64,000 nt of DNA from positions 13,542 through 77,541 of the forward strand of contig NW_013657643.1 of assembly GCF_000142905.1 (NCBI RefSeq), in the 5' to 3' direction. Each line of letters begins with the position of its first letter. The first letter of the stretch is position 1. Positions 29,422 to 32,868 of this stretch are shown piece after piece. The stretch is from Thecamonas trahens ATCC 50062 (lineage: Eukaryota > Protista > Apusomonadida). Both the position numbers and the translations under genes were made by a program. The notes under the pieces were generated by a model that was not told the origin of the DNA, did no database searches, and saw only the letters and a list, made by a program, of their open reading frames with translations.

Positions 29422-30541
29422 GCTAAAGTGCTTGGTGCAAGAGTCAGTGAAGTGCTACAGTCGCCGATGCCTTGACCGCGCCCGTCGTCCCTCAACAACA
29501 CACAGCCCCCCCTCACCGCATCAAGGCTGTAAACGGCGACAGCTTCAAGGATGGGGAGACGGGGGCGGCCGTCGCAAAACCGGCCATCGTCGATCCATCG
29601 GTCTGTATAAACGTCGAGGTGCCGATCAAGGCCGGGCCGATTGCCCGAGCGCTGGCCGGTGCTCTTATCATGCATGCAGGCAACATCTCCAAGGGACGCC
29701 CATCCTCTACATTGCAGCGGATACCAGCTGCAGGTATCTGTGCTTTTATTGCGCTACAGCAAAGCGACTCGTGGCCAGCCCAAGCTCGCTCGAGATCCGA
29801 TCCCAGCCGACCACATGTCAGTGCATTGAATTGATACCCCCCCATCATCCACTGGCAGCTGGCCAGTTGCCCAATCTTGATGACGCCATCCAACACCGCC
29901 ATCTCGCCGACTCGCCGCAGGCAACAGCTCCGCAGTCGAGGCCACCGCGTTCGACCGACGAGTGCCGGCCGATTCGCCCGCCGGCCAGTCTGCACTAGAG
30001 GCACTCGACTCGGCGGTGAGGCAACCGAGCTTGGTGTATGTCCCCATGTGAGAGAGCGTGTTGATGGAGCCGGTAGCGTTGTACCTGGGTGGGTATAGAT
30101 GGCTGATGTGGGTATGGTCTGTGCTCTTGCCAACGTATGCGCCATGCTCAGACTCGCCATGGTCGCCGCCTCCCACCGGCTGGCATTGCCTCCATTTTCG
30201 GCTCGCCATCCCATCGCTGCGGGAGAGCGAGGGCTAGGGATGGGCAAGTATGGGGCATTGTCCATGGATTCCTCCCCGTTCTTCAGCTGTACCCCTCGGC
30301 GTAGCATGGTGGTAGACCCTGCGCGTCGTTTCTCTACCTTTATCAGCCTCTTTCCCCGTACCCAGCCGCGAGAATGCCTGTGACGCGCTGTGTGTGTTGG
30401 TGGAGACAGTCGAATCGAGAGCGACTCACCGAGAGATGCGGCGATGATGGCGATGCGGGGGATGATGCTGAACTGCGGCGATGATGTGATGGCGGCCTTT
30501 GGCTGTACGGTATGGTACTCGACGTGGTTGCAGTGGGAGGG

Positions 30542-31485
30542 ATGGACATCGAGGACGTTGTTGTGGAGGACGGGGGCTCGCCTCGCATCTGTTTGCTGGG
30601 GCGATGGCGGGTATTGCTGAGCATGTGGTTATGTTTCCCGTAGACACCATCAAGACCCGCATGCAGGTCACGGTGGCGGCCGTGGAGGGCGTCGCAGGCT
30701 CGGCGGGCGGCGCTACGGTGGGCATCCGCGGACCGACGGGCATGGTGGGAGTGGCGCGGTCGATTGTGGTGAACGAGGGCGTGATGCGGCTGCTTCGCGG
30801 CGCTCAGAGTGTGGCGCTGGGTGCTGGCCCGGCGCACGCACTGTACTTTGCCACGTACGAGAAGATGCGTAAGGTGCTTGGCGGTGACAACCGCGACGAG
30901 CACACGCCGTTGGCGGCGGCGGCGACGGGCGCGGTGGCGACTACCGTGTGTGACACGATCATGACCCCGTTTGACGTCATGAAGCAGCGGCTGCAGATCT
31001 CAGGCTCACCCTACCGTGGCGTGGTCGACTGCGCCCGGACCATGCTCCGAGTTGAGGGCTTTGCGGCCTTCTTCCGCTCGCTCCCCACCACGCTCGTCAT
31101 GAACGTGCCGTACGCCGGCTTCCACTTTGCCGCATACGAGTCGCTGTCCAGAGTACTGATCTCGGACAACGACCACCACCCGCTGGCCAACTCTCTGGCC
31201 GGCGCCGGCGCCGGCGCCTCGGCCGCCGCCCTCACCACTCCGCTCGACGTCGTCAAGACCCGCCTGCAGACCCAGGACATCGGCGCCGCCACCGGCGCCG
31301 CCATCCGCAAGGTTCCTTACAGAGGCATGGTCCAAACTGCACGCACCATCGTCGCCGAGGAGGGCCTCCGCGGCCTCTTTGCTGGCATGGTCCCGCGCAT
31401 GCTGTTCTTTGCACCCGGCGCCGCCATCGCATGGACCACATACGAGACGCTCAAGCATCTGACCCGCCACTGGGCCTCCGAGTAG
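30542..31485 (+). CDS. Mitoferrin-type mitochondrial carrier (SLC25A37/28, MRS3/4); apparent 1-nt frameshift at G5 run 30572-30576
   Basis: AGAMAGIAEHVVMFPVDTIKTRMQ, GAGPAHALYFATYE, TPFDVMKQRLQ, MNVPY, TPLDVVKTRLQ. The N-terminus MDIEDVVVED joins in frame if one G is added. Confidence 0.9.
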
Positions 31486-31705: not shown

Positions 31706-31792
31706 GGATGGCGCCGAGGCTCGGGCCGCGCTCCGGCCCGCGCAGTGAGCACAGGCTTGAGGAGCGCGACCGTCATGTCGTGTGCTGACCAG
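31706..31792 (-). promoter_or_regulatory. SECIS element (type II) in selenoprotein 3' UTR
   Basis: Minus strand: AUGAC-GGUCGCGCUCC-UC-AA-GCCUGUGC-UCACU-GCGCGGGC-C-GGAGCGCGGCC-CGAG, giving an AUGA/GA quartet, a fully paired 11-bp helix II, unpaired AA and an 8-bp apical mini-stem. Core 31720-31776; outer limits approximate. Confidence 0.88.
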
Positions 31793-31857
31793 CAGCAGTC
31801 GAGGAGAGGGAGGGGGGGGGGGGGGGGGGGGGAACGGGGAAAAGAGGCTACCTTGCG

Positions 31858-32721
31858 CTACAGCATCAGCTCCTCCTTGTCGCCGGGGCACTCGGACTCG
31901 GAGCGCGGCTCAGGAGCAGAAATATCCGAGGTGTCGGGCGCGTCGGCAGCGTTGCCGCCGAGAGCTTCGAGGATGTCGCCGAGAGGCGCGTGCTCGCCGT
32001 AGTTCTCCTGGCGGAACTCGTAGAGCAGATCGCCGCCGATGTCAAAGACAAAGGTGCCGCCGAGCTGGAAGCCGTCGCCCTTGAGGTTGCCTTCAAAGCC
32101 GCGGTCCTTGGACTCCTTGATCCGCTTGCGGGCGGTTGAGTTGAAGAGGCCAAAGCCCGAGGTAATGCCCTTCTTGGCCAGGCGAAGCGCCTTGTGGATA
32201 GTCTTGCCCTCGTTGACGAACAGCTCGCCGGCCCAAAAGTTACCATCGTAAAAGTCCTTGTAGCCAAAGGTCTCCACGCCGACGCCCACCAGCCGAACGC
32301 CCATGGCGTCCAGCTGCGGCTTGAGCTGGCTCAGCTCGTAGGCCCCCAGTCTGCAGATTTGTCAGCCAAACCTACGCAGGACATGAACCACAACCCGCTG
32401 TGCACCCATTCGCCCGTTGTTTGCCGCCCAGCGTTTGCCCACCACCGTTGCCCGTCCCGTCCACCATCACCAGCCGCCGCCAGGCACAGATAGGGATGAA
32501 CGAAATAAGAGAGGAGAAAAAAACAATGAGTCTGTTGTTGCCCCCCCCCCCCGGGCTGGGTCACGTCACGTCACGTCAGCCCCCCTCCCCCCTCCCCTCC
32601 CCAACCATCGTACCTGCTCCTTCCACAGAGTCTTCACCTGCATCTGCTGCGGGGTGAGACGGTCGGTGATGACGCACTCACCAATGGCGTCCGCCACCTG
32701 GTGCACGTCAGAGTCGGCCAT
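31858..32721 (-). CDS. Selenoprotein of the SelU / PRXL2B (FAM213B, AhpC-TSA-like) family with UxxC motif. Exons 32614-32721, 31858-32397; Sec codon at 32362-32364
   Basis: Spliced IGECVITDRLTPQQMQVKTLWKEQ|RVVVHVLRRFG(TGA)QICR...GVRLVGVG...GNLKGDGFQLGG matches PRXL2B, whose motif is LRRFGCxxCR; SECIS downstream. Confidence 0.9.
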
Positions 32722-32868
32722 GGTGAAGGTGAAGTGTGTCGGGGGGTGTGGGGTGTGGGGTGTTGGGGGGTTGGGAGGGGGTCAGCCAGTCAGCCAAGTC
32801 CGACAGATGCTTTTCCCCCGTCTTTTAGATGGAGAGGACTGCGTGGTGATGGCTGGGTTGAGAGGAGG

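Follow-up and report, generated by a model that had tools for sequence, protein, structure and literature searches.

A predicted SelU-family selenoprotein behind a truncated public gene model in Thecamonas trahens

In a 64,000-nucleotide stretch of Thecamonas trahens DNA (the window), a gene of the SelU family carries a TGA triplet inside its frame, raising the question of whether this codon ends the protein or is read as selenocysteine (Sec). Reading of the sequence places the gene, in two exons, on the minus strand of an intron-containing eukaryotic contig of ~65% GC. The coding part of exon 1 (32614..32721) runs for 36 codons from an ATG at 32721, with the translation MADSDVHQVADAIGECVITDRLTPQQMQVKTLWKEQ, and ends in KTLWKEQ before a GT donor (GTACGA). 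A phase 0 intron of 216 nt follows (32398..32613, GT...CAG), and coding exon 2 (31858..32397) then reads RVVVHVLRRFG, the TGA (32364-32362) and QICRLGAYEL, continuing to a TAG stop at 31860-31858. Both the splicing and the position of the TGA had been proposed in an earlier interpretation made from the letters alone (the sequence-only reading), and both hold. The spliced frame, ...KTLWKEQ/RVVVHVLRRFG-TGA-QICRLGAYEL..., stays open for 167 codons after the UGA, and the read-through protein has 215 amino acids with Sec as residue 48.

The closest relative in the databases, P0002, is itself a truncated call, and its contig (L033) is intronless, probably represents a transcript and shows 64% identity over the 167 amino acids after the UGA. 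In this contig, LWKDQRVVLHVMRRFG spans the exon junction without a gap and is followed by TGA-QICRLGAFEL, while exon 1 (32709-32614) is 63% identical to its N-terminal piece. As L033 is exactly colinear with the spliced frame and has no intron, the splice junction is confirmed.

The public protein at this locus (P0001) has 148 amino acids and is 100% identical to the piece found in the list of open reading frames. It is encoded by 31858..32304 on the minus strand, takes the internal Met of MGVRLVG (32304) as its start and carries no redox motif, so that automated annotation does truncate the gene, as had been predicted. We consider it very unlikely that this product is the real protein, with the upstream sequence serving as a leader or as a separate short peptide ended by the UGA. 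Such an interpretation agrees with the public gene call, but it leaves a product without the RRFG-[C/U]xxC-R active site present in every full-length relative. Moreover, the sequence before the UGA, exon 1 included, is conserved with L033 at the protein level, and many relatives are cut at the same place by gene callers.

Family searches were run separately with exon 1, with the 11-residue stretch that precedes the UGA and with the 167-residue piece that follows it. The post-UGA piece gave a full-profile match to Pfam PF13911 (AhpC-TSA_2; 82.3 bits, the curated cut-off being 27), and a profile search of the 28.7-Mb genome returned this gene as the sole match. Its best match in the PDB was PRXL2B (9us9; E=2.7e-22 over 138 residues), with 9usa the only other entry found, and the top cluster in the structural Atlas was likewise named prostamide/prostaglandin F synthase. 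By these comparisons, assignment of the Thecamonas gene to the SelU/PRXL2 (AhpC-TSA_2) family is well supported.

The UGA lies at the redox position of this family. In tBLASTn comparisons with the window, it aligns with the first Cys in the RR(F/W/L)G-C-xx-C-R motif of the Cys-form relatives P0003, P0005, P0008 and P0010, and in the alignment with 9us9 it falls on Cys44 of PRXL2B (C44-x-x-C47), residue 2 after the UGA corresponding to chain residue 46. These alignments bear out the claim that the UGA stands where PRXL2B homologues have the first Cys of CxxC, and on the homologue alignment we read 32362..32364 as Sec (U48), the first position of U-Q-I-C. The TGC codon at 32353..32355 encodes Cys51, the presumed resolving Cys of the UxxC motif. 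The Thecamonas motif is LRRFG-U-QIC-R, as against RRFGCxxCR in more than 70 relatives, and the CR that follows the xx of [C/U]xxC is conserved in all relatives.

We then asked what other members of the family carry at this site. TGA was found at the Sec codon in all seven of the related metatranscriptome or metagenome contigs checked, with both flanks conserved and protein identities of 40-64%; beside L033, these are L034, L035/L037, L040, L041/L042 and L043, from five other relatives. An exhaustive search of representative sequences returned 737 proteins at E<=0.001. Among the 159 usable top matches, the residue at the site is Cys in 77 and Trp in 4, and 29 begin 1-6 residues after it. Sec forms of the family are thus widely found in marine eukaryotes, and in metatranscriptomes they are systematically cut short or mistranslated by gene callers. 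The four entries written with Trp could be taken to mean that the UGA is read through as Trp or Cys, by near-cognate suppression or under a variant code, and not as Sec. However, the single such case examined (L043) proved to have TGA in its DNA, translated with another code table. TGA also terminates other genes of the Thecamonas genome, for example the GPx gene on C40, and the genome holds a set of Sec-specific factors together with a SECIS, making read-through as Trp or Cys the least probable of the alternatives considered. Overall, roughly one in five of the closest cluster representatives (P0018-P0165) starts just past the Sec site.

Minimum free energy (MFE) folding of the region beyond the stop revealed a SECIS-type hairpin at 31718..31779 on the minus strand, which is also the top match in the window of two covariance models (R1 and R2) described below. 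Its AUGA core (31776-31773) lies 81 nt past the TAG, and the distance from the UGA to the element is ~590 nt. In the MFE fold, an unpaired C separates the AUGA from the 5' arm of helix 2 (31771-31761), which is followed by UCAA (31760-31757), a mini-stem with its loop (31756-31736; 8-bp stem, 5-nt loop), a bulged C (31735), the 3' arm (31734-31724) and C-GA-G (31723-31720). This matches the succession of AUGAC, stem, AA, apical mini-stem and CGAG that the sequence-only reading had placed about 80 nt past the stop. Its description of the stem as a fully paired 11-bp helix stands only if wobble pairs are counted, the helix comprising 10 Watson-Crick pairs and one G.U. Helix 1 is weak, and immediately above the G.A quartet there is a C/C mismatch.

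The MFE z-score of the hairpin is -1.86, which is unremarkable for sequence of 65-74% GC. A descriptor of the SECIS build, composed after the element had been seen, matched once in the window (128 kb over both strands) and never in 100 dinucleotide-preserving shuffles. The Rfam model SECIS_1 gave no match at the SelU region at E<=10, and a scan of the whole window with Rfam at gathering thresholds returned no SECIS match. The same model (RF00031) found nothing in the whole Thecamonas genome and nothing in the contigs or UTRs of the relatives. Because it misses every SECIS candidate of a Sec-decoding genome, its silence at the SelU element is uninformative. The term 'canonical SECIS', used for the hairpin in the earlier interpretation, is apt for its motifs but not for the element as a whole, which is undetected by SECIS_1 and is an organism-specific variant with unpaired C's to either side of its core.

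That variant recurs in the genome. Eight other genes with an in-frame TGA were found (4 GPx-type, 3 deiodinase-like and SPS), and a fold scan of their 3' regions gave one 3'UTR hairpin for each, of the same build as the SelU element (L016:1174-1244(-), L015:2188-2262, L023:2124-2192, L024:2004-2073, L019:2526-2598, L021:2649-2719, L022:2106-2179 and L005:966-1039(-)). The common build is (A/C)UGA-C, a helix of 9-11 bp, (U/C)CAA, a mini-stem, one unpaired nucleotide, the 3' arm and C/U-GA-G; among the eight, CUGA replaces AUGA in three, and UCAU takes the place of the AA bulge in one. The SelU gene resembles these genes in having a UGA at the redox residue and a SECIS of the form (A/C)UGA-C...(U/C)CAA...C-GA-G. 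It differs from them in protein family and, with its AUGA and AA, from the three that have a CUGA core. Fold-based scanning of 3'UTRs was adopted after scanners for contiguous stems had been dropped, because they were too loose in DNA of 65% GC and, for the other elements, too strict. One of the GPx genes (L015; VNVASY-U-GLT, G000:C37:86435-86776) lies on the same contig as the SelU gene, ~9 kb past the end of the window; its SECIS-like hairpin, 156 nt past the stop, has an atypical bulge (CAAU) and reaches only 18.8 bits with R2.

Covariance models built from these other hairpins place the SelU element first in the window. R1, made from the single hairpin of a deiodinase-like gene on C10, scored it at 22.8 bits (E=1.3e-3), the next match in the 64 kb having 12.3 bits. 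R2, made from the hairpins of six other in-frame-UGA genes (GPx, deiodinase-like and SPS) with the SelU element excluded, scored it at 31.7 bits (E=1.1e-4), with the next match at 15.0 bits. R2 also finds both elements left outside its training set. For both models the E-values are rough and the training hairpins were chosen by fold. A MAFFT alignment of the eight other hairpins had been dropped, at 47% column identity, in favour of bootstrapping the model from one element. In an alignment of all nine elements, 93.8% of the cells are paired and 15 of the 16 pairs show compensatory changes, figures that are somewhat inflated because the alignment was fitted to the model; shuffled and slid controls gave far lower values. 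The SelU SECIS-type hairpin is thus more than a chance structure.

Among the relatives, the fold scan gave a clear hairpin with an AUGA or UUGA core 74-120 nt past the stop in L034, L035/L037 and L040, and for L033 only an ambiguous candidate ~70 nt past the stop. As R2 does not transfer to the SECIS elements of the relatives, conservation of the element across species is judged from the fold scan alone.

These results also bear on the simplest alternative, namely that translation does end at the UGA, in which case the locus would be a pseudogene, or a Cys-form gene inactivated recently, and the hairpin a chance product of GC-rich sequence. The modest MFE z-score, the lack of an Rfam SECIS match and the readiness with which GC-rich DNA folds all point in that direction. 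Against this, the hairpin tops models made from the SECIS elements of other genes, the 167 amino acids after the UGA are intact and conserved, the gene is the genome's only member of its family, and TGA stands at the same site in the seven related contigs at 40-64% protein identity. On balance, we regard a true stop as highly improbable.

A genome search located the Sec machinery: a tRNA-Sec with the anticodon TCA (74 bits; ARAGORN), SepSecS (285 bits in a profile search), SelD/SPS (193 bits), which has its own SECIS-like hairpin, and eEFSec (L007), identified by the eukaryote-specific SelB domain III (euk_SelB_III, 124 bits). The best match to TIGR00475 (selB), L006, was rejected as eEFSec and is EF-Tu. 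With tRNA-Sec(UCA), SepSecS, SPS and eEFSec all present in the genome, the premise of the sequence-only reading that this organism decodes Sec is upheld. The KTI12/PSTK family has one match in the genome (G000:C51:120125-121065; L038/L039), a candidate for either KTI12 or PSTK, and the search for SBP2 returned about seven genes with an L7Ae domain, three of them weak matches and none assigned to SBP2.

Because the UGA occupies the position of the CxxC Cys, TGA is conserved in the related contigs, the hairpin follows the SECIS consensus of this genome and the Sec machinery is present, we read the codon as Sec. The gene is thus very probably a functional nuclear gene for a 215-amino-acid, cytosolic-type, thioredoxin-fold oxidoreductase of the SelU/PRXL2 family in which UGA codon 48 specifies selenocysteine. 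The central claim of the sequence-only reading, an unannotated selenoprotein of the SelU family with a UxxC motif and a SECIS, agrees with the aligned UGA, the seven TGA-bearing contigs, the genome-type hairpin and the Sec machinery. In the mechanism that we propose, the 3'UTR SECIS would bring to the ribosome, at UGA 48, a SECIS-binding protein together with eEFSec loaded with Sec-tRNA(Sec)(UCA), yielding the recoded active site RRFG-U-Q-I-C-R. From knowledge of the family, Sec48 would act as the nucleophile on the O-O bond of a peroxide or endoperoxide, or on a disulfide, and would then form a selenenylsulfide with Cys51; a thioredoxin- or glutathione-type reductant may reduce this bond and so recycle Sec48. 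This chemistry is put forward because it can be modelled on Cys44 and Cys47 of the mammalian prostamide/PGF synthase. In PRXL2B, Cys44 is the catalytic residue.

Where the gene belongs within the family is less clear-cut. A vertebrate-centred study equates SELENOU1, 2 and 3 with PRXL2A, PRXL2C and PRXL2B, respectively, and finds that every Sec gene detected falls in the SELENOU1 branch (bioRxiv 10.1101/2025.05.29.656587). The named anchors among our top matches are PGF synthases of Ciona and fish (74-83 bits), and no named PRXL2A or PRXL2C occurs among the top 150 matches. The SELENOU1/PRXL2A type of motif is RRPG-[U/C]-xxC-REE, as against RRFG-U-QIC-R in Thecamonas; the relatives with RRPGC found here are unnamed (for example, P0115). 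Like PRXL2B (SELENOU3, 9us9), the Thecamonas protein has a short N-terminus (Cys44 compared with U48) and the LRRFG-C-xx-C-R motif, but with Sec at the position of the first Cys.

In a quick maximum-likelihood tree of 149 columns and 159 rows, built without a PRXL2A or PRXL2C anchor, the gene pairs with P0002 (support 97). It lies outside a 39-row clade (support 98) that holds the PGF synthases of Ciona, Bagarius and Coregonus, and the deep forks of the tree are unsupported. The assignment to a 'PRXL2B-like subfamily' made in the sequence-only reading is thus supported in part: PRXL2B is the best named match and the only solved one, but the tree puts the gene outside the chordate clade. A fair use of 'PRXL2B-like' would therefore be as a label for the nearest named relative rather than as a statement of clade membership.

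The chordate PGF-synthase clade itself contains verified UGA forms (P0004/L034 and P0018/L041). Because such forms both adjoin the Thecamonas gene and occur inside this clade, we tentatively raise the possibility, which we hold to be somewhat less probable than its converse, that Sec was the ancestral state of the entire RRFG-[U/C]xxC-R (PRXL2B-like) branch and is still widespread in it. Animal PRXL2B would in that case have changed from Sec to Cys, and the placement of all Sec forms in the SELENOU1 branch would be valid only within animals.

Sec forms of SelU/SELENOU are known from fish, birds, sea urchin, green algae and diatoms, those of algae and diatoms having been reported since 2004-2007. 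SelU selenoproteins are listed, for instance, in Ostreococcus and Thalassiosira (Lobanov et al. 2007, PMC2375036). The Thecamonas gene resembles SelU/SELENOU in its AhpC-TSA_2 domain, in the UxxC at the redox-Cys position and in the 3'UTR SECIS for Sec insertion, and the distribution of Sec and Cys forms among lineages is likewise patchy. Unlike known SelU proteins, it comes from an apusomonad lineage, and its short N-terminus lacks a signal or membrane segment. Our literature search on Thecamonas together with selenoprotein or selenocysteine found nothing relevant. The novelty implied for a Sec form in the earlier interpretation was overstated, with Sec SelU known in algae and diatoms and the UGA shared by many environmental relatives. 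SelU-type Sec genes are already known in other protists, and the Thecamonas case is an annotation fix.

The correction replaces a public 148-amino-acid product without an active site by what we predict to be the real protein, a 215-amino-acid selenoprotein. It would add one family to the selenoproteome of a protist lineage of phylogenetic importance near the animal-fungal stem, and provides a further clear instance of the SECIS variant of this organism, to which standard models are blind. The known picture of Sec recoding and of the chemistry of the family stays as before.

Several minor features surround the gene. C-rich tracts of the mRNA sense occur in the 5'UTR (32722-32790) and in part of the intron, and 23 consecutive G of the plus strand (31812-31834) correspond to a C-run in the mRNA between the stop and the SECIS. 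Within the intron, at 32563-32580 on the minus strand, GACGT is repeated three times in tandem (gctGACGTGACGTGACGTGAccc), with an ACGT core resembling a CRE or G-box. Finally, a convergent neighbouring open reading frame (30499-31485, plus strand) with mitochondrial-carrier-like repeats ends ~230 nt from the SECIS, so that the 3' ends of the two genes face each other across a short spacer.
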